Source of the DNA: Bugula neritina
Taxonomy: Eukaryota > Animalia > Bryozoa
Assembly: GCA_964035545.1 (NCBI GenBank)
Contig: CAXIUT010000121.1
Location: 1 to 12,144, forward strand
Reading direction: 5' to 3'
Length of the DNA: 12,144 nt
The notes below the pieces were generated by a model that saw only the letters and a list, made by a program, of their open reading frames with translations, searched no databases and was not told the DNA's origin. Each line of letters begins with the position of its first letter. The first letter of the stretch is position 1. This document shows, one piece after another, positions 1 through 12,144 of this stretch. The translations under genes were made by a program, and so were the position numbers.

Positions 1-93
1 CCCAACCCCAACCCCAACCCCAACCCCAACCCCAACCCCAACCCCAACCCCAACCCCAACCCCAACCCCAACCCCAACCCCAACCCCAACCCC
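1..93. repeat. Left telomere, (CCCCAA)n (C4A2)
   Basis: Perfect CCCCAA tandem repeats from base 1 to 93, then unique AT-rich sequence; this is the Tetrahymena-type ciliate telomeric unit. Confidence 0.99.
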
Positions 94-276
94 ATGTCAT
101 CATATTATTCTATTTACATTTAAAGATTAATATAAAATCCTAAAGATATAAAATATTTAATTTAGTCAATATACTCGTATCTGTCATCACTTATGATTGA
201 TATTCTTAGAAATATCTACCCAATTCTTAATGAATAAATATAGTAAAAAAATAATCATAATTTACATAGACAGAGA

Positions 277-963
277 TCAATCAGACTATTAAGTCGACTA
301 ACTGTCTATATATCCGGGATGGATCCATCTCTGAAATACTCCATGGTTCCACAACCCGTTTCTCCCATACCCGCAGATGTCAATCATCAATCCCTCTCCA
401 TGTTGTTTGTTGTTGACCCATTTGCCGTAAATTTTGCTTCCATCAAGATGAGTTTCAATTCCCCTCCCATGGCAAGTATCACACCAAAATTCACCTTCAT
501 ACTTTCTTCCGTCTGGCAGACTGTAAGCCCCCTACCCGTGCCTCATGTTGTTCCAATACTAGCCATAATATCGATGTCCGTTAGGCCAAATATGCTCTCC
601 AAGCCCTTATTTCCTATCATTGATCCAATCTCCTTAGTAGTAAGAATTATCTTAGTAATAGTTCTTTCCTGAACCATGCCTCTCATTTGCCTTGAACGAA
701 CCTACGTAGCACTATCCACTGTCCCATACTTTTATTCCCTCTCCCTGCTCTTTGTCATTAAACCACTCTCCATCGTACTTAGCTCCATATTTGTAGAGAC
801 AAATCCCTTTTCCCCATCTTTTACCTTCGCTCCAATAGCCTTTGTATACATCTCCATTCGGATAAAAATTGAGTCCATATCCTTTGGGTTATTTACTGAC
901 TTTCACCTCTTCTTCGCCTTCATAACTCATCTAAGAAGCAGACCCTTTATCGTAAGAACTCAT
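277..963 (-). CDS. MORN-repeat protein, 228 aa (TAR=Glu)
   Basis: ATG at 963, TGA at 279-277, with no internal TGA. Translation gives serial MORN units: YPNGDVYKGYWSEGKRWGKG, YKYGAKYDGEWFNDKEQGEG, YYEDNSYYEGDWINDRKEGLG, WPNGHRYYGEYWNNMRHGEG, LPDGRKYEGEFWCDTCHGRG. The listed + ORFs 319-672 and 676-966 are its antisense shadow. Confidence 0.95.
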
Positions 964-1775
964 TAAATGATTATATTGAATATTAATAGGATTATTTTAC
1001 TTCTAATTAACTCATAAGGTAGTAATAACTATAAAGAGCTGATCATAATAAATTAAAAAATACAATACAAAGTGATTCAAAATGATAATTACTTTCTCCT
1101 GAACAGTTAAAAATTAATTTCCTGTCTAACATTTGATTATTTCTTGGATAAAATCATCAATTACATCAAAAAAAACTAGAATATTACCTCAAATTAAATT
1201 AATTTATTTATTTTATTTCAAAATAACAATGAGAATCATATAGTTTTTAATCAGAAAAACTTCTATAGTTTAAATATCCATTTAGTTTCTCTTTATTTAT
1301 TTAAATTTCATCATTGAAAATATGAACATTAACGATGACTATTGAAACCAGTAAGTCAAAAAAGCATATCAATAAGTATTTATATCAATATAAATAAAGT
1401 ATTTAAGACAAAAAAAGACTTTTAATCTGTTTAATTGCAATATTAAGTCTTGTTTAAGATATTGTTTTCAATGTTCTAGTCATTAATGATCTCTACATTG
1501 TACATCATTTGATTTATATTGCTTAAATCATCAAATATTATTTCTTTTTTAAATCATAGAAGTCATCTAACTAAAATTAAGTACGATATTTGAAGACAGC
1601 AAAATGAGAATTTAAAATTAACATGAAAATAGATAGATTTGTTAGATATGGTATAGTTTGGAGAGTATTTATTCAAAAAATCAAATATTAAGCTATGTTT
1701 TCTTTAACAATGATAACCAACTTTAACTCCTATTGATAATGCAACATATAATATTTAAAATTATAAAGAAGAATT

Positions 1776-2162
1776 ATGAACTTTTCATAACCTTTATATT
1801 ATTGTAATACAGTTCGAACCCCTATTCTTCACTACTAAACCTACTGTCTTCATCAGATGGCTCAACTAGCTGCATAGCTAACAACTTTAAAAGAATAGAA
1901 TCAAAAATTGAAGGAAAAAGTGGTTATTGTTTAAAAGCAGAAGCAAATAAGATAGAAAGAGAATTAGAAGTTAAAAGAAACTCTAGAAAGGAAATACCAT
2001 CAAATAAAAAGAAAATATAAGAAAAGAAGAATAACTAATGACACTAAAGTATTTCTATGCAAAGAGTAAAGATGTTAGAAGAGGTACTCATCAAAGATAG
2101 CTTTGAATGCGCACTTTAGAAAGAAACATTCAGTCGGAGACTATTAAAGAAGTGATTTATGA
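1776..2162 (+). CDS. Small coiled-coil protein with a single C-terminal C2H2 zinc finger, 128 aa
   Basis: ATG at 1776 (first after an in-frame TGA at 1734), TGA at 2160-2162. It has a heptad-like segment (ELTTLKEENQKLKEKVVIVEKQKQIREKENEKLKETLE), a basic run (IKRKYKKRR), then FLCKEERCEKRYSSKIALNAHFRKKH = C-x4-C-x12-H-x4-H. Confidence 0.85.
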
Positions 2163-2626
2163 ACGATAAATGTCGATTTTGTATCAATTTAAATTTATTA
2201 GATTTGACAAAAAAGTATACAAAAGTTGACTAAAATACACTTAAATAGGAAGTTATATCGTTAAATCGCTTAATAATCGTTAAAAGCTATTAATTTAGAC
2301 AACAAAATTTGAATTATATTGTTAGAATATCATATTGTGATTTAAATAAATTTGAATTTTATTCATAGAGCTTTATAAAAGGAGGTGTTCACCTTTATTC
2401 GATATAAGTTTATGAAGTTAAAAAAATATCATTGATTTTAGTTGTTATGTTTAAGAATTAAATCATTGATTTCAAATGCGTTATTGATATTGTCAAAATA
2501 TTAAGCCAATTCTAGCTATAAATAAAGAAATGTGATATCAAAAAAACCTCTTCTAACCAATATTTAAAATCTAATTAATAAAATTGTTCTATAAATCATG
2601 ACTTAGAATGTTCTTATTTTGATTGA
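2159..2626 (+). CDS. Hypothetical ORF, 155 aa, overlapping the upstream stop (ATGA)
   Basis: Open from ATG at 2159 to TGA at 2624-2626 (MNDKCRFCINLNLLDLTKKY...HDLECSYFD). No recognisable domain; with a single stop codon, ORFs this long arise by chance fairly often. Confidence 0.3.
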
Positions 2627-2818
2627 ATAATATCATCTTATGTAATCAGAATATCAAATTAATAGTTCATTTATCTCATACAATGTATTTATATTAAGGA
2701 CTAAAAGGTATGTCTTCAACAAAAACATCAAATATTTCTTTAAAGAAACTATCTTGCTTGATGATTATAATAAATAATTAGTGATTTGATAGATAGTTCA
2801 TAATCATTTCATATTTAA

Positions 2819-3686
2819 ATGAACCAAGATAACAACCAACAAAACTAATAAAGTCAAATGCCCAACTGCTCAGAAATCATTGGAAAAATACCTTTCTTCA
2901 CAAGATTCATCTACTTCTCCCTAGCTATCATCTGGTTTTTAGACCTGATCACTAGCTTTCCATCTTCCTTAATCGCTAGTAGTGTAGAAATGACTTTCTA
3001 AAATAAGAGACTATGGACTCTATTCATTGCATCCTTTTATGTAGATAGACTGTTCTTTGTGATTCTTATTATCTATAACTTCAACTCCTTCTTGCCAAAA
3101 CTAGTATTCCATCTCTTATATTTAGGAATAACGTCTTTCGACTTCAGTGCTTATGATAAAATTCATCATTAATGGATCAATCATTCAACTATTAATCCTT
3201 TTAGTTCAAAGTTTGATAGGATCTAATGATATCAATGGAGTGGGAGGTATATGGTTCAGCATGATTTTCAAGTATTGTTACTATAACAGTGACAGTTTGA
3301 TCAAATTTTGCTGTTTCAACTGGAAATTCAAAAGAGGATTTTACCCATTTGTCTTGCTTCTTGTTTGTACTATCCTTACTTTCGGAATACGTTTAGATAT
3401 GATAATAGGTCTACTCTATGGATTTTTTCAAGTCATGATGTAAAAATTGACAACAGCTCCCAGCTTTTGTCTTACTAAAGTAGCAAAATTACTTCGGGTA
3501 ACTTCTATTCAAAGTTGGAAGAATAATGATGGAGAAACAAATGATTATTCTGATAAGGCAGCTTATTAGAATTTGGATAGTTTTAAATCTTAATAGATGC
3601 CTTCAAAAAGATTAGAAGACAACTCTCTTGCACATCATTCTGATCCATTTGCTAATCAGCAAGGAGTTCGTCTTGGAGATTATTGA
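2819..3686 (+). CDS. Derlin/rhomboid-like membrane protein, 281 aa; exons 2819-3103 and 3126-3686
   Basis: N-terminal IPFFTRFI followed by multiple hydrophobic helices, a RLWTLF loop motif, FYPFVLL and a C-terminal FANQQGVRLG resembling the p97-binding SHP box. A 22-nt GT-AG intron restores the frame. Ends TGA TGA. Confidence 0.75.
3104..3125 (+). other. Spliceosomal intron, 22 nt
   Basis: gtattccatctcttatatttag; removal joins LPKL to EERLSTS in the frame of the downstream transmembrane segments. Confidence 0.85.
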
Positions 3687-3740
3687 TGAGTTAAAATTGA
3701 TTGTAATTATATTGATTTGAATATATTAATTTTAAACCAA

Positions 3741-4768
3741 ATGTATGAAAATATTAATGAAAGTAGAAATAATTCTTCTTCCGAATTAAAAATACTACAA
3801 GCATCTTACCTTAGTCAACATTTTCACATGATTTGTAAGGTCCTCTCCAAAAATTATCGCCAAGCTTTCCACTAACTCATCATTAATAACTAGGAGTACC
3901 CTTCTTCAGTCAAAAATCAAACAAAATAATTAGTTTAAAAGCTTGAACAAGTGATTTTTAGAAAGAAAAAGACAATATTTGACAAAATGGTTCGATTTAT
4001 TGATTCGAAAGATAATCATAAAAACCTTTCATGCATAAAAATATCAAGTTTATTTGTAATAATATAGGTACTTTGACAATCAGAATCACACCTCTTCTCG
4101 TAAAACCACTAAATAGACTCAAATAGATGAAAAATAGGAGACAAACCTTATCCAAAGATAAGCATTTATTTCTTCTCATCTGTCTTTCCAACTTATAAAA
4201 ACTAGTCAATATTGCTAAAATTGATGCTTTCGAAAGTATAAGATCCCAAGCAGCCCATCAAACACAAGTTGGTAGTCCTCTTTCCATACAGATAAAAAAA
4301 TAAATACTTTAAATTTAATCGAAATTATCAATAATCAGAGAAGATCTAATCTGAGATTTGCTTTTAGTTAACTTTATCTATTCTAAGGAAACTTAGAATC
4401 TCAAAAATAAATAGTATTTGAGGAAGAATAAGCAAATATATAAGATTAATAATAAAACGATGAATAAATGCTTTTGAATTGCTATAAAAATATGGTAAAT
4501 ATGGTAATATATAGGCTTCTAACTTAATAAAATCAAGACCAAAACCTAAAAATATCCAAAACTATCTTAAATAATCAAAATAACTAGCAGTTATATCAAT
4601 AGTTCAACAACTATAATTATTGCATTTAAAGCAAATGGGAAATAGATTTATGGATATATATAAATCTCATATCAATTATACCAACTAATAAACTCTTTAC
4701 ATGCTCAATAGATAAATAGTAATTTTTCTTTTATCAAGGCTATTCTTGAAAAATAATATTTATCTTGA
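3741..4768 (+). CDS. Uncharacterised helical protein, 315 aa; exons 3741-4047, 4068-4271, 4292-4494, 4515-4718, 4739-4768
   Basis: ATG at 3741; removing four 20-nt GT-AG introns gives a 948-nt open frame ending TGA at 4766-4768. Contains the acidic tract FEEEEANIEDEEENDEEML (TAA=Glu). No family recognised. Confidence 0.7.
4048..4067 (+). other. Intron, 20 nt
   Basis: gtttatttgtaataatatag; retention hits an in-frame TGA shortly after. Confidence 0.8.
4272..4291 (+). other. Intron, 20 nt
   Basis: gtagtcctctttccatacag; pyrimidine-rich; retention leads to an in-frame TGA near 4352. Confidence 0.8.
4495..4514 (+). other. Intron, 20 nt
   Basis: gtaaatatggtaatatatag; same length and GTA...TAG form as its neighbours, but not forced by an immediate stop. 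Confidence 0.65.
4719..4738 (+). other. Intron, 20 nt
   Basis: gtaatttttcttttatcaag; removal yields AILEKEYLS-stop, ending just before the convergent TTLL gene. Confidence 0.65.
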
Positions 4769-4816
4769 CAATTTGAATATTTATGATTAATTTATTGTTT
4801 ATTTACATTGTAAAAA

Positions 4817-7729
4817 TCATATTAATTTGTCGATGTCAATCAACTCTCCATCATTCTAAAATATTGGCTCTTAATCTTGCTAGCTAACAACTATCTAATT
4901 TATCATCTTTTGATATAATTAGTTATTTTACTCATATATCTTTCTTATTTGTGGTCCATCTCTTTACTACTAAAAAATCAATTAGAATTGGAACTTTTCT
5001 AGACTACAATCAGGAGCCATGTAGCGTGTGTTATTTGTGTAATGCAAAGTAGGAGGAAATAAAGGATCCAGAGAAACTCTTAAAGTTTGTTCAAGCATAG
5101 AAGGAATAACTCTTTTAACTACACTACTACTCAACTATAAACAAGGATTCGTGTTAACTTAAATCAAATTGACCTACAGATTTTAATCTACCATAAAATC
5201 AAGACCAAATACTTCAAAGTTATGCAATTTCCTTTGAGGATCTAGAGTTATATAGGTTGAAAAAATTGCATCTTTTGCGAGATCTCTCATTTTGATATAT
5301 ATTGCAGACATATCGAACTCTTTTTAAGGAAAGTTTTTCGTAAAGTATCTCTGAAGATCATTATAAGACACCTTGTTGCCTTCTTCATAGCGACTATAGC
5401 TTTCAGCTGATTGCTGAACTGCATCATTTGTGAGATGAATAGTTTAATCTTTGATGTCAGTTAGATCAAAAAATTATGATGATGTTCTGACATATCCTTC
5501 CTCAAAGAAATAAACTCTTAGTCTACCATATAGTGATGTTATAACCATGAAATGTCTAATATCGAATTTTCTTCCTTTAAAAAGTAAAGGCTTTTCTATA
5601 TATTTTTGAAGAATATAAGTCTTATCATCTCCATTTTCATGTTTTCCCTTTTTATTTAGTTTTCTTCTTATCTAATGAAGATCTTTAAGCACAACAATTC
5701 CTGCTCCTTGATTACTGTTTTAACCAGGCTTTAGTATCCATATATTAGCCTGTCCATGGTCTTTTCCATATTTTTTATAAGCTAAAAGAAATTCTTTAAA
5801 GCTAGGATCACTTTATCCTTGTCTAATATGAAAAGTTTAAGGAAAAGCTTTGTTTAATGACTGGTTAGTAAGTTGATAATAGAGTCTGAGATGATGAAGA
5901 AGAGCTTTTTTGTTTCCCAAACTATGATTATACTCAATATGATTATGCACATGAATTTATTATTGAGTACGTCTCGTGAGATATCCGTTGGGTATATATT
6001 TAAGACGTACCTCTAAATCATCAGGATTAAAAATATGTTTATCTGATATTGAATTCAAGTAAATTTAAGAATCATTTGCAGTTAATATTTTTTGTTATTA
6101 TTTGACTGAAATAGGAGCTTTAAACATAACTCCTTTAGGAAGTAGATGTTCAAGTGGTTTTTTAGATTCCTGTCCAGTTTTACTGCATAGATGAACAGCT
6201 GATATATTACTTAAAGATAGATACTTTTTATTATTTCTATTTGTCAGTTTTACCTCTTCATTCTCTTGTTTTAACTGCTAACTTTTCTTTTATTTAATTA
6301 CTTTTTGAGAATAATCAAGTACATTTTTAGTACAAGATGGTTCTTGTTAAAAGATGCTTTTGTTTTTTAGTTGTGTCCAAATAAAATGAGCTTCATTTAT
6401 ATTTTTAGTTTAATGCCACCATATTTTTCTTTTCATTATACTTCTGATCAACATAGAGTTGTTTCCAGGACCAACAAAATAAAAACATTTACTGATAGAT
6501 TGCTTTTCAGCTTTGGACATTGACATTGTTTCAACTATGTTTAGTGAATCATATATTCGATGAGCTAGATTTATCATAAAAAGAAACTATCTATATTTTG
6601 ACATTTTTTGCTAATAAACGCCTTTTTATTCATTGTTATTATTTAAAATAAAAGTAAAGTTTTTTTTGTTTTTTTATTTTAAATTTCTAGTTGTCTTTTA
6701 AGGACTAAACACTTTCTTTTACTTTAATTAACTGGCATATTCTTTGATGGAGTTCTTTTTTTAAAGTTTTTTTAAAGAAGGTTTCAAAATCTTACTTTTA
6801 TCAAGAGTTTATTAATTCTGAATCTCATTAATTACCAACTATAAATTCTTTTTCCTTTTTTGCTTCTTACATTTAGTCAGAATATTTTCAACCAAAACTT
6901 CTTTTTTTGACTCAATTACAAGTTTTTTTTCTTTCTAATGTTAAGCTCTTTTCGAAAGTATATAGTGATGAAGAGTAGAATACTTGGGTTCTTATTCAAT
7001 TTTATCAATAATTTTTTTTTGTTTATACTTTCTTGAAGGATGTAAGGCAGGAATAACACTATATTTCTTTTAATTAGTTCCATTATCTTATTGATAGTCT
7101 TCTTTTTCATATTGTAAATTTTAATCTTGAAATTAACTAGAATTAAAATTCGTTGTAGACATATTTTTAGCATCATTATTGCTTAGTTCAGGAACTTTTA
7201 TTAAGTTAAACAAATTTCCATTATGTTTTTAATTGATATTATTTCCTTTCAAAGGAATTTAGTATAATTTTCCTTTAGTTATTCTAAAATATTGATCTCT
7301 TTCTTAGCTATTATCAAGTGAACTCACAACCTTTCTTTTCACACTACATTATTGCCTTTTGGAAGTCTATTCTTCATGAAGTTACTTTTTGATATCAAAA
7401 TGATCTATTTTCATTTATAGTGCAGTTCTATCTCGATTCAAAGCTAAAAATTATTAATTTAAACACTTTTTATAACTTCCTTTTTTATCTTTAATCTTTT
7501 TTTTATTCGTAGCTGGTGCAAATTCATTAGTATTACTATTTAGAACACTATTCATAAAACTAAATGAACTCAGGAGGGAGCCACTCTCTTGAATAGAGTA
7601 AGGAGTTAAGTCATAGTGACCACATTTAGGTAAAAACGATGAGCGAGGTTATTATTTCTTTAAATCATGACTTGTTTTTTTAAGAAAATAGATCAATTTT
7701 TTATCTTTAGGTTTTACTTATTGATTCAT
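4817..7729 (-). CDS. Tubulin-tyrosine-ligase-like (TTLL) tubulin glycylase/glutamylase family protein, 970 aa, intronless
   Basis: A single TGA-free frame from ATG at 7729 to TGA at 4819-4817. Motifs: YFVGPGNNSMLIRSIMKRKIWW, HFIWTQ, HNHIEYNHSLGNKKAL, FPETFHI, WILKPGENSNQGAGI, YILQKYIEKPLLFKGRKFDIRH, EGYVRTSS, IHLTNDAVQ, YEEGNKVSY, FEVFGLDFMVD, LIEVNTNPCLE. Long low-complexity K/N/E-rich N-terminus; the start is the most upstream ATG I identified. Confidence 0.95.
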
Positions 7730-8716
7730 TAATATAAAATTATTAATAGCAAACTATGAAAAACAATATGAACAAATGATTCATTAAATAAAGTAGCAAA
7801 AGTAATCACTTTTTGTATTATATTCTCCAAATATTAGATAAATATCTAGGTTGATAAAAATGACTAATATTAAAGAGAAGAACCCATTCAGGTACATTCT
7901 AACATAAAGATATTTCCTAAAAAACTGATTGAAAATGTAATAATTAATTTTATTTGATCTTTAGACTTCAAAAAATGACATTCTCATCAATAACAACCTT
8001 TTAAATAGCTACACCTATTGAAAATATGACAATCAAATAGCAAAGAAAAGTTTTTAAGCTGTCAAATAAGTAAGTGGTAAAAATACTAATCATTAATATT
8101 GTTTGAAATATAAAATACAGTTTCCTAGGATAACAAAGAAAAATATTTTTATTCATTTTAAAATTAAATTGAAATGAAATTGATCCCATCACTATGTTAC
8201 TAAATATATTGTTTAAATGATCAATATATATATATATTAGCACCTTAGAAATCAAGGTCATTTATTTATTCACTCTATAATGATCAATATATAATCAAGT
8301 AAGAAAATAGATAAATATCAAAAGTTGAATATTCTTATTTTCAAGTCAATTTTTTTATTAAAAAAAAATAGTTTATTTTATTATTATTAAGATCATTTTT
8401 TACTGCTTTGTTTGCTTTAAATAGATTTAAATATTATTTTGTTTGATTTTTAAATCATATTTTTACCGTTTCAACTCAATAAAATAAATAGTTCATTTTT
8501 ATGAAGATTTATTAGTTTGTTAGAATTGCAACTTATTTTTGATGCTTTAATTAATATATAGTCTTATTTTTATTGTTTTTTCCTAGAATTCAATTTTTTC
8601 TTGATTCAGTTGCAAAAATAAAATAAAAAAAGAAAGAGATCGAGTACCTAAAACTACTTAAATCAAGATAATGACTTAGATCTTTCCTTATTTAATCGAT
8701 AAATACTAAAATATCT

Positions 8717-10039
8717 ATGATCAGTAGATATTAACACTTCAATAGGTTATAAACTCTGAATAAAAATTAGATTGTTATAATAATTGAAATCGAAAGGTCA
8801 ATGAATAAAGCATCTTCACCAATGGGCAAATCAAATATCGGATAAAACAAAAGAAAAGCTATTTTCAATAAAATACGTCAGTCTTTAACGGGTTTCTAAC
8901 TAATTCGAAAAAATCAAAGTATTGTAAAGAAGCGGCTTGAAGAAGAAGTGAAAAGTGTTTCAAACTCAGACAGCGATTAAAATGTTAATTAACTCAAGAA
9001 TTAAGTTTGTAACGCCTAACTTTTCACTTAAAAATACTAAATTCTTGAGAAACTAGGAGAAGGAAGCAATGGAGTTGTGTACAAAGTCATCAAGAAATAA
9101 ACTAAAGAGCACTATGCAGTAAAATAATTTATTTTTGAAGAAGAAAATTTGCCAGGAATCAAATCTAACTTTCTGAGTATCAAAAGTTTAAGGCATCCAA
9201 ATATCATCAACTACTAAGCTCTCTATATTGATATAAAAAAAAGAACAGCATGGCTAGTGATGGAATTCATCAGTTCACCTTCATTAGCATCATTATTTCC
9301 CTTTCTACAAGTAGAAAAATAAGTCAAAAATATTATGTTCCAACTCTTCAGTTGCCTCACTTACCTCCACAAGCATGACTTAGTTCATAGGGACATCAAA
9401 CCTGAGAACATTCTTTATGACCAAAAGAAAAAAACTATAAAAATCATAGATTTCGGGATTGCAAAGAGATGCAAAAGGAGAGGAGTTGTTTTTGATATGT
9501 GGACTAATACTGGAACCCTATTATATAAGGCTCCTTAGATGTTTTTTGGAAGTTACAGAGAAGGGATAGACATATGGGCAGCTGGAATCATGCTATACTG
9601 GCTAGTAGCTGGTAGAACTCCTTTTGAGTCTGAATATCATAACTAAACTATCAAAAATATCCGATAGGCAGAACTAGTTTTTCCTTCAGAATTTAATAGT
9701 TGCAATTTAGACATTAAAAACCTACTTAGTTGTATGATAAACAGAAACATCTAAGAAAGGTTTACTGCATAACAGTGTACAAAACACAGATGGTTTAGAT
9801 CTATTTTAGAATCATCAACTACTCTTCATAAAAAAGAGGTTTAATCTACAAATAAAACCGTGAAAGTTCAAGAAGTTAAGAACAAGCTAAAGGTTTTGCA
9901 TACTTTTACTTTAAGAGATAATTTAGAGGATAGCAACATCCTTGACATATCAAAATCAAGTTTAAAATCATCGAGACCCTATGTTAAGATAATAGGAGGA
10001 GAGTAGTATCATTATATTGATTCTAATTGGAAAGAATGA
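8717..10039 (+). CDS. Ser/Thr protein kinase (CAMK-like), ~440 aa; start uncertain
   Basis: [47 protein letters not shown] (E = TAG at 9536-9538), [25 protein letters not shown]; TGA at 10037-10039. Alternative starts are ATG 8801, or ATG 8671 via a possible 22-nt intron at 8724-8745. Confidence 0.95.
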
Positions 10040-10287
10040 AAGTTATCATTGATTATTTTATAATTTTTGATATCCTCATAATATCTAAACATCATCATTT
10101 CCATTTGATTTCAAAAGTTTAATTAGTTAATCGAGTGATTTGAGAAATTAATTAGTTGTAAATTACAAATATATTATCTTTGACAATTGAGTTCTTGGAT
10201 CAAACACTTTAGTTAATCCTGTTCTATTAGTTTTCATTTACTATATAATATAGTTTTTAAATAAAATCAATCATATTCTTAAGAAAA

Positions 10288-10894
10288 ATGGTAAACTTAA
10301 AAGAAATACGATACACATTAACTGCTTTTAGAACAAAAAAAACATATCTTTTCTTCCTAGCAGCCCAGCTACTTCTAGTCCTACTTATTATCCCCATCGC
10401 ATTCGCCTCTCCCACACATTTTAAAACTCCAATAGTAATAATCCTAGAGTTCTTCCTCTTTCTTATGATTACCTTCGACCTGTACCTCTCTCTAACTCAG
10501 ATTAGGAATTCGACTTGCCTCAGAATAACAATTTTGGAAAAGCAAAGCAAATATATTTGACCTCTGTTTACTTTTCATTTTCGCTGCAACTCTTGTCTTC
10601 TTAGTATTTTATGGATAAGGATAAGGCAAAGACTACAGGAGACTGCTATAGACTGATGATGTGGTTATTTTGATAATTGTTCTAACTCGATATGTAATGC
10701 AGGTTACTCGTCTTTTTTGTGCTTTTCGAATGGCTAGAAAAAACAGAGGAATTCACTCATAAATAAAAAAGATAGATCTGAATAACATTGAACTAGCTAA
10801 TAATCAAAGTTTTAATTTCAACGAAGAACACAAAGCTGATCAGATATTAAGATAAAAAATGAACAAGAAACATGAGTTGATTGAAGAAAACTGA
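10288..10894 (+). CDS. Four-TM voltage-sensor-like domain protein with no pore, 195 aa; exons 10288-10481 and 10501-10894
   Basis: S1-like YLFFLAAQLLLVLLIIPI; S2-like IVIILEFFLFLMITFDLLGIRL; S2-S3 FWKSKANIFDL (compare the channel consensus FF...WNxFD); S4-like LTRYVMQVTRLFCAFRMARKNR; then a short polar tail and TGA at 10892-10894. Confidence 0.7.
10482..10500 (+). other. Intron, 19 nt
   Basis: gtacctctctctaactcag; retention stops at TGA 10558-10560, while removal restores the S2-S3-S4 frame. Confidence 0.85.
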
Positions 10895-11003
10895 GTGAAT
10901 GATTAGATCATAGCTGATCTTATTACAATTCTTGATAAATAATTTAACTATCTTGTGAAGTATTCTTGAAAAATACAATAGAAGAGATTATGTAAACGAA
11001 TCA

Positions 11004-11708
11004 TCAGCAATGTTTTTTCTTAGAATCATCTTGTTTCTTGTTTGAGTCATTAAGTTTAGCAAATTTAAAGAACTCTCCTTTCAATTTTTTAAAGGTCTAA
11101 ACTTCCTGCTTATGTGAATGCAAGCTACTTCTCTTTTATTCAGTTAGCCCTTTATCTTCTTCAAAGACTTTATGTTATTTTTCTTTCTGATAGTTAATTT
11201 CAAGTTTATTGGCTTCAACATCGCATTTTAATTCTTTTTCTTACACTTAAAGCTAATTATCGCTGGTAGAAATTTATTTGTACCTTTTTAGAGTATCACC
11301 TTACTCATTTTGTTTATCTTTATTTAAGAAAATTGATCTGATATCAACAATTGAGTTGTCTCTGAAGTAGAAAAACTCAATTAAGAGTTTGGCATGCTTA
11401 TCTGGTGATTTATTTAATTTACAAATACATTTATGTAAAAAATTAGGGGTTGGGGTTGGGGTTGGGGTTGGGGTTGGGGTTGGGGTTGGGGTTGGGGTTG
11501 GGTCTTAAACTATTACTTTAATGTTGAAGTTAGTGGAGTAAGGGTCTAGGTAGAATTCAGTGGTTGAATGTTGGTTACCAAATCCATTTTGAATTTAGTA
11601 GTTAGAAGCAAGGGTGATAGTTTCCTTATTTTTGTGAATCTTTAAATGAGCTTTGCATTGTTTGAGTCTGAGGGAAAGCTGTTTAATAGTGAATATGACC
11701 TTCAACAT
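11004..11708 (-). CDS. Putative N-terminal C2 (NT-C2/EEIG1-like) domain protein, 234 aa as assembled, interrupted in frame by a telomere tract
   Basis: ATG at 11708: MLKVIFTIKQLSLRLKQCKAHLKIHKNKETITLASNYEIQNG...FNIKVIVED-(PT)9P-NFLHKCICKLNKSPDKHAKLLIEFFY...KKHC, then TGA TGA (11006-11001). The alternating beta-strand pattern and the L-x-K-S-P-D-K-x-A-x-L ending resemble ciliate NT-C2 proteins; the family call is from recollection only. Confidence 0.65.
11446..11502 (+). repeat. Internal telomeric tract, (GGGGTT)9 GGG
   Basis: 57 bp of perfect repeat in the same orientation as the right telomere, 513 bp inside it. Confidence 0.98.
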
Positions 11709-12015
11709 GCAGAATTCTAGAATTATTAGCTTTAAAGTGATATAATTATACCCTGCTTATTTGATAAAACCTTAAGAATAGCCAATATGATAAAGGAAAT
11801 GATTTCGATTATTTATAACTATATAAAATAGGCATTGAATCAATACATCTTCCCTTCATTCAGACAAATAAAGAAGCAATATTGGAAAAAAATGTTTAAA
11901 ATATATAATTCTAGGTACAAATAAAGACAAAATGTTTCAAAAAAATTATCAAATAAATATTTTAGTTAATATTTGATACTGATTTTAATTTCAATTAAAA
12001 TATAAAATGTATATA

Positions 12016-12144
12016 GGGGTTGGGGTTGGGGTTGGGGTTGGGGTTGGGGTTGGGGTTGGGGTTGGGGTTGGGGTTGGGGTTGGGGTTGGGGTTGGGGGTT
12101 GGGGTTGGGGTTGGGGGGGTTTGGGGGTTGGGGTTGGGGTTGGG
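12016..12144. repeat. Right telomere, (GGGGTT)n
   Basis: GGGGTT repeats to the end of the sequence, with a few homopolymer-length variants in the last ~50 nt. Confidence 0.99.

Follow-up and report, generated by a model that had tools for sequence, protein, structure and literature searches.

Evidence that UAA and UAG are both read as glutamate, with UGA as the only stop, by a ciliate carried in the Bugula neritina genome assembly

The 12,144-bp contig CAXIUT010000121.1 of the Bugula neritina assembly GCA_964035545.1 was analysed over its whole length, positions 1 to 12,144, which is called the window here. It carries genes for a MORN-repeat protein, a tubulin-tyrosine-ligase-like (TTLL) protein and a serine/threonine protein kinase, all of which contain in-frame TAA and TAG codons. 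The question raised by this locus is what these codons mean and which codon ends the genes. A preliminary description of the window had proposed that TAA and TAG both encode glutamate and that TGA is the sole stop, and this proposal was borne out by column-based codon inference in the kinase and TTL families. On these sequence data, the source of the window, a ciliate, very probably reads UAA and UAG as Glu and terminates at UGA alone, which is NCBI translation table 30; we place the probability of this reading at about 96%.

Codon inference of the Codetta type, as proposed in the preliminary description, was performed with our own scripts. The sample comprised 76 ciliate kinase domains from 60 contigs and 15 host kinase exons. 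A second family was represented by 23 ciliate TTL domains from 17 contigs, and the two families together covered 69 contigs. In-frame TAA, TAG and TGA were masked as X, all sequences were aligned to a hidden Markov model, and each codon was scored as the summed log-odds per amino acid over its aligned columns with the tested sequence left out. Sense codons with n of at least 20 were used as controls.

The 76 kinase domains contained 19,124 codons, among them 557 TAA, 262 TAG and a single TGA. Over 517 kinase sites TAA was assigned to Glu with +620 bits, against -57 bits for Gln and with Lys outside the top three residues, while TAG was assigned to Glu over 239 sites with +324 bits, Gln following at +56 bits. 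All 60 sense codons evaluated in this family were inferred as standard. Glu was obtained again for both codons when the reference was restricted to the standard-code host kinases (TAA, +288 bits; TAG, +202 bits). The TTL family also yielded Glu for TAA (+156 bits, 167 sites) and TAG (+127 bits, 100 sites), with 54 of 54 sense codons inferred as standard. Taken with termination at TGA in the ten open reading frames (ORFs) described below, the features found are those of table 30: UAA and UAG as Glu, UGA as sole stop and all other codons standard.

The most frequent reassignment in ciliates is that of table 6, in which UAA and UAG encode Gln, and some features of the present organism resemble it. 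Its telomeres, of C4A2 type, are like those of Tetrahymena, its tRNA(CUA) copies have an anticodon arm resembling that of tRNA-Gln, and for TAG, as for GAA itself, Gln takes second place among the residues. The columns in which the codons occur nevertheless point elsewhere. The mean column Glu frequency was 0.22/0.26 for TAA/TAG and 0.23/0.27 for GAA/GAG, as against approximately 0.10 for CAA/CAG and approximately 0.055 for AAA/AAG; the value for TAA/TAG is thus about 2.4 times that for CAA/CAG. A Gln-dominated kinase column contained CAA/CAG in 48 sequences and TAA in four, and Gln was absent from the 24 columns of a CDK alignment presented below. Since the column profile of TAA/TAG is that of GAA/GAG and not that of CAA/CAG, a Gln reading is highly improbable. 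Dominance by Gln or Lys, which would have spoken against the proposal, was looked for in the TAA and TAG columns, and Glu-like columns were observed instead. The two UAR codons (UAA and UAG) made up 50% of Glu codons in kinases and 62% in TTLs, which suggests that they are ordinary glutamate codons accounting for about half of all Glu codons.

Conserved kinase positions were also compared codon by codon. The Glu of the APE motif in the activation segment was encoded in the ciliate sequences by GAA (31), TAA (22), TAG (10) and GAG (6), and the alpha-C Glu by GAA (24), TAG (18), GAG (16) and TAA (12). Three invariant or near-invariant Lys columns contained AAA and AAG only; each comprised about 75 ciliate sequences, none of them with TAA. 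These Lys columns bear on the split code of Oligohymenophorea sp. PL0344, in which UAA encodes Lys and UAG encodes Glu. Such a code is known from an oligohymenophorean (PMC10553269), and CUA tRNAs were found here while UUA tRNAs were not. However, TAA scored best as Glu without Lys among the leading residues, it occupies both the APE Glu and the Glu of the TTL motif LIEVN, and the invariant Lys columns never contain it; a split code is therefore scarcely credible, in agreement with the preliminary description, which had argued against it.

It could also be supposed that the in-frame TAA and TAG are untranslated and reflect pseudogenes, unspliced tiny introns or assembly errors, and a 20-nt intron was indeed seen in the ciliate RPS11 gene. 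The probability of this explanation is practically negligible, as 819 such codons lie in 76 full-length, frame-intact kinase domains, where they are concentrated in Glu columns. They also exchange with GAA/GAG between orthologues, and TGA is excluded from the domains that hold them.

The exchange between orthologues was observed for a CDK gene on ciliate contig C256, in which the Glu positions of GEGTYG, PSTAVRE, THE and APE are occupied by TAA/TAG. Its orthologues on four metagenome contigs, with 70-79% identity, replace TAA/TAG by GAA/GAG, and the reverse, at the same columns, TAG being among the codons at the PSTAVRE Glu. TAA/TAG occurred at least once in 24 columns, whose sense residues were Glu (37), Asn (9), Asp (5), Ser (2), Lys (1) and His (1), with no Gln; all copies end in TGA at the same position. 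The code is thus shared by a clade of environmental relatives.

The window gave a concordant result when analysed by itself. The 20 in-frame TAA/TAG codons of its two domains scored +29.6 bits for Glu, followed by Ser (-6.2), Lys (-6.9) and Gln (-15.4). The kinase gene lies at 8801-10039 on the plus strand and contains a Pkinase domain at 9035-9796 (PF00069, 185 bits) with two TAG and eight TAA inside; it ends in TGA at 10037-10039 and probably starts at the ATG at 8801 or at the one at 8717. The TTLL gene lies at 4817-6586 on the minus strand and contains a TTL domain at 5066-5953 (PF03133, 174 bits) with three TAG and eight TAA inside. It ends in TGA at 4819-4817, and its start is uncertain, the frame being free of TGA as far as 7780. 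Stop-free pieces of the window genes were also searched against Pfam; those of the kinase gene matched Pkinase, and the TTLL piece 5477-5671 matched TTL at 3e-18.

The individual codons to which the preliminary description had drawn attention were all present, and their value as evidence differed. The TAG at 9536-9538 (plus strand) occupies the APE Glu, as claimed: this column is Glu in 49 of 55 other sequences and in 12 of 12 host sequences, and 31 other ciliate paralogues carry TAA/TAG there. In the TTLL gene, the TAA at 5161-5159 (minus strand) occupies the invariant Glu of LIEVN. Glu was found at this column in ten of ten sequences with a sense codon, two of them from the host, while 12 other ciliate TTLLs have TAA/TAG; this TAA is the best single site of the window for the Glu reading. 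The TAA at 5722-5720 (minus strand) had been regarded as a metal-binding Glu, in KPGEN, and this part of the claim did not hold, as the position in KPGxN is variable (Glu 3, Ala 3, Ser 3, Gly 2, Val 2; host Ala, Asp, Ala) and no conserved Glu. The TAG at 5137-5135 (minus strand), after NPCL and described as the Glu of PCLE, lies in a column that is only moderately Glu-like (Thr 4, Glu 3, Ser 2, with 11 other TAA/TAG); it agrees with Glu but counts for little when taken singly. The Gln sites cited for comparison were as described, with CAA in ILQKY and CAG/CAA in DAVQQ.

Two further regions had been cited in support. The MORN-repeat gene at 277-963 (minus strand), which ends in TGA at 279-277, was recognized by Pfam MORN on two of its stop-free pieces, 715-888 and 301-531. 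In-frame TAA/TAG occur at YjGDW, YYGbYW and RHGbG (lower-case letters), where Glu had been proposed; the codons are compatible with Glu, but these are variable repeat positions that singly give weak evidence. The acidic run at 4420-4467 (plus strand) reads GAG GAA GAA TAA GCA AAT ATA TAA GAT TAA TAA TAA AAC GAT GAA TAA, so TAA is interleaved with GAG, GAA and GAT as described. No protein-family match was obtained for the ORF that holds it (4225-4746, plus strand), and its coding status is unsupported. Neither an Rfam match nor, by ARAGORN, a tRNA was found in the window.

TGA was found at the end of ten of ten ORFs checked, at the homologous C-terminus in each case: the three window genes, the ciliate eRF1 and RPS11 genes and five CDK orthologues. 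The ciliate eRF1 gene is located on contig C314 at approximately 17036-18373 (minus strand) and carries TAA/TAG opposite host Glu at five of eight alignable sites. Its product retains GGQ and aligns to residues 116-136 and 140-195 of human eRF1. A 24-residue piece spanning the NIKS motif was compared by alignment to the host eRF1 exon of the same assembly, and TASNIKS was found to be replaced by RASQIKD, the NIKS serine of the N-domain being changed to aspartate (xIKD type); YLCDNKF is likewise replaced by YNCDSRF. The motifs KATNIKD of Tetrahymena and SIKD of Paramecium have been tied to UGA-only specificity (PMC3632111). An eRF1 restricted to UGA had been implied by the preliminary description; the altered motif is present, and the restriction itself is predicted from it. 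An eRF1 with QIKD and YNCDSRF would no longer recognize UAA or UAG, and UGA would be the sole terminator.

Several observations weigh against the reading of both UAR codons as Glu with UGA as the only stop, and these concern the gene ends and the decoding tRNAs. True 3' ends were examined for a handful of genes, which bears on a context-dependent code, with UAA and UAG read as Glu inside genes and also terminating some genes near the 3' end. Such codes exist in Condylostoma and, for UAA, in Blastocrithidia (PMC4967479, PMC12153298). Context dependence is nevertheless very unlikely here: all checked ORFs run through to TGA where their homologues end, TGA is nearly absent from domains, and the xIKD change in eRF1 is typical of UGA-only factors.

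As regards decoding, suppressor tRNAs for both codons had been implied, and genes for one of the two were recovered. Two cloverleaf tRNA(CUA) genes were identified by ARAGORN on ciliate contigs, at C10:16787-16858 and at C256 approximately 3981-4054. The two genes share 70-80% identity, and a BLAST search with the C10 gene matched only the C256 copy. Both were typed against host tRNA-Glu and tRNA-Gln as references, in a set that included no ciliate tRNA-Gln. In the C10 copy, the UCC/GGA acceptor stem was identical to host tRNA-Glu at 10 of 14 positions and to tRNA-Gln at 4 of 14, and the T-arm at 15 of 17 and 11 of 17, respectively; both parts are of the kind found in eukaryotic tRNA-Glu. Its anticodon arm, on the other hand, is closer to host tRNA-Gln, the stem-loop being one base from the host tRNA-Gln(CUG) loop, and identity over the whole length is not discriminating (Glu 59-64%, Gln 58%). 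The C256 copy is ambiguous as to Glu or Gln type, and a Glu identity of the tRNA(CUA) genes is only suggested. The normal tRNA-Glu(UUC) of the ciliate is on contig C54. Three pattern scans of the ciliate contigs, and a covariance model of Glu/Gln type, yielded no tRNA(UUA), in a search that an intron-bearing tRNA would escape. Six tRNA(UUA) pattern candidates on small contigs were rejected as not being tRNAs by ARAGORN, which also found no tRNA in 68 metagenome loci where one beside the CDK gene was looked for.

An anticodon with C34 cannot read UAA, so a tRNA(UUA) would have to exist for UAA to be translated. The ciliate genome appears to be assembled only in small part, and the absence of the tRNA(UUA) most likely reflects this incompleteness. 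Under the glutamate reading, a tRNA(UUA) encoded in the unassembled part would read UAA, and UAG by wobble, and GluRS would charge the UAR-reading tRNAs. The mixed character of the C10 copy admits a further suggestion. The UAG decoder may have descended from an ancestral oligohymenophorean Gln suppressor tRNA, with the Gln-like anticodon arm kept and the acceptor stem and T-arm turned Glu-like, and the UAR codons may have switched from Gln to Glu by a change of tRNA identity and not by new codon capture; or the organism may not be a peritrich, which would imply a second origin of UAR as Glu in ciliates. Taken jointly, these suggestions are considered unlikely. Separately, an ARAGORN-clean tRNA with anticodon UUA and an Asp/Glu-like D-loop was observed on the standard-code host chromosome C5 (C5:1314247-1314321; piece L153 68-142, plus strand), representing a pseudogene or else a natural ochre suppressor.

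The window, which is the whole of contig C130, has repeat tracts at both ends, with (CCCCAA)n at 1-94 and (GGGGTT)n at 12016-12144 read directly from the sequence. Since C4A2/G4T2 telomeres are present at both ends, the window is an entire macronuclear mini-chromosome of a ciliate. A (GGGGTT)9 tract also lies interstitially at 11446-11499, 516 bp inward of the terminal telomere; it could mark a place of alternative telomere addition or of fragmentation, or else a join made during assembly.

The ciliate is a passenger in the bryozoan assembly, which totals 216 Mb in 321 contigs, a few of them chromosome-sized and about 300 small. When the assembly was searched with the Pfam kinase model, no internal stops were seen in domains on the large contigs, whereas each domain on the small contigs contained 3-20 in-frame TAA/TAG and TGA hardly ever occurred there. 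We infer that the organism is a peritrich. The C4A2 telomeres, the tiny introns and epibiont life on a sessile marine animal are consistent with a peritrich and go no further than that. A narrow range of tiny-intron lengths has been described in peritrichs (PMC13685798), and the telomere repeats of phyllopharyngeans are C4A3, unlike the C4A2 found here (PMC11687900). The RPS11 gene (contig C173; piece L010 819-1340, minus strand) has one 20-nt GTA...TAG intron after codon 5 and no in-frame TAA/TAG in 153 codons. Its best matches were metagenome proteins (81-85% identity), with named ciliates at 68-73%; no named peritrich was present among the RPS11 homologues retrieved.

Observations were also made on certain other contigs. 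Internal telomere repeats flank runs of N in C66 (piece L117, approximately 916-1363) and C10 (piece L135), and these larger ciliate contigs are therefore scaffolds in which several mini-chromosomes have been linked end to end. The 65-kb contig C214 (piece L012, 36000-45999) contains a cluster of 13 tRNA genes together with NADH-dehydrogenase-like ORFs and is therefore the genome of an organelle, probably the mitochondrion. Organelle-type tRNAs were also present on C73. The small contig C212 carries, at 4096-5733, two kinase domains with no in-frame stops within an 803-aa open frame and is probably not of ciliate origin.

The main value of these results is practical, lying in annotation and decontamination, and the understanding of genetic-code evolution is left unchanged. 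Roughly 300 small contigs of the bryozoan assembly are ciliate. Both the standard code and table 6 leave their genes fragmented or wrongly translated; these contigs should be split off from the host sequence and given annotation under table 30. A genomic example of the UAR = Glu code, complete from telomere to telomere and with about half of all glutamate codons written as UAR, is added by the window, and the candidate tRNA(CUA) and eRF1 sequences are supplied for the study of reassignment.

Among known systems, table 30 is exemplified by Vorticella, Opisthonecta, Campanella and Carchesium, and the present code agrees with it in the meaning of UAA and UAG, in the sole stop and in the otherwise standard codons. 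The C4A2 telomeres, tiny introns and xIKD eRF1 fit the traits of an oligohymenophorean. The organism here differs in being known from the assembly of a marine bryozoan, in which it is a passenger, and UAR accounts for about 50-60% of Glu codons in the domains sampled, for which no comparable figure was found in the cited literature. UAR = Glu has been described for peritrichs, and a single origin within Oligohymenophorea, from an ancestor with UAR = Gln, is inferred for it (PMC11687900, PMC10553269). The PL0344 code likewise has UGA as sole stop and UAG read as Glu through tRNA(CUA) genes related to tRNA-Glu, but its UAA encodes Lys (PMC10553269). In table 6, used by Tetrahymena, Paramecium and Oxytricha, both UAR codons are also reassigned, UGA is also the sole stop and the NIKS serine is also changed to aspartate (NIKD/SIKD type), but UAR encodes Gln. 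The trypanosomatid Blastocrithidia reads UAR as glutamate as well (PMC12153298), but there UGA encodes Trp and UAA doubles as a stop, whereas TGA is a plain stop here. The UAR = Glu code is thus already known and is rare, and the present ciliate is a further case of it.

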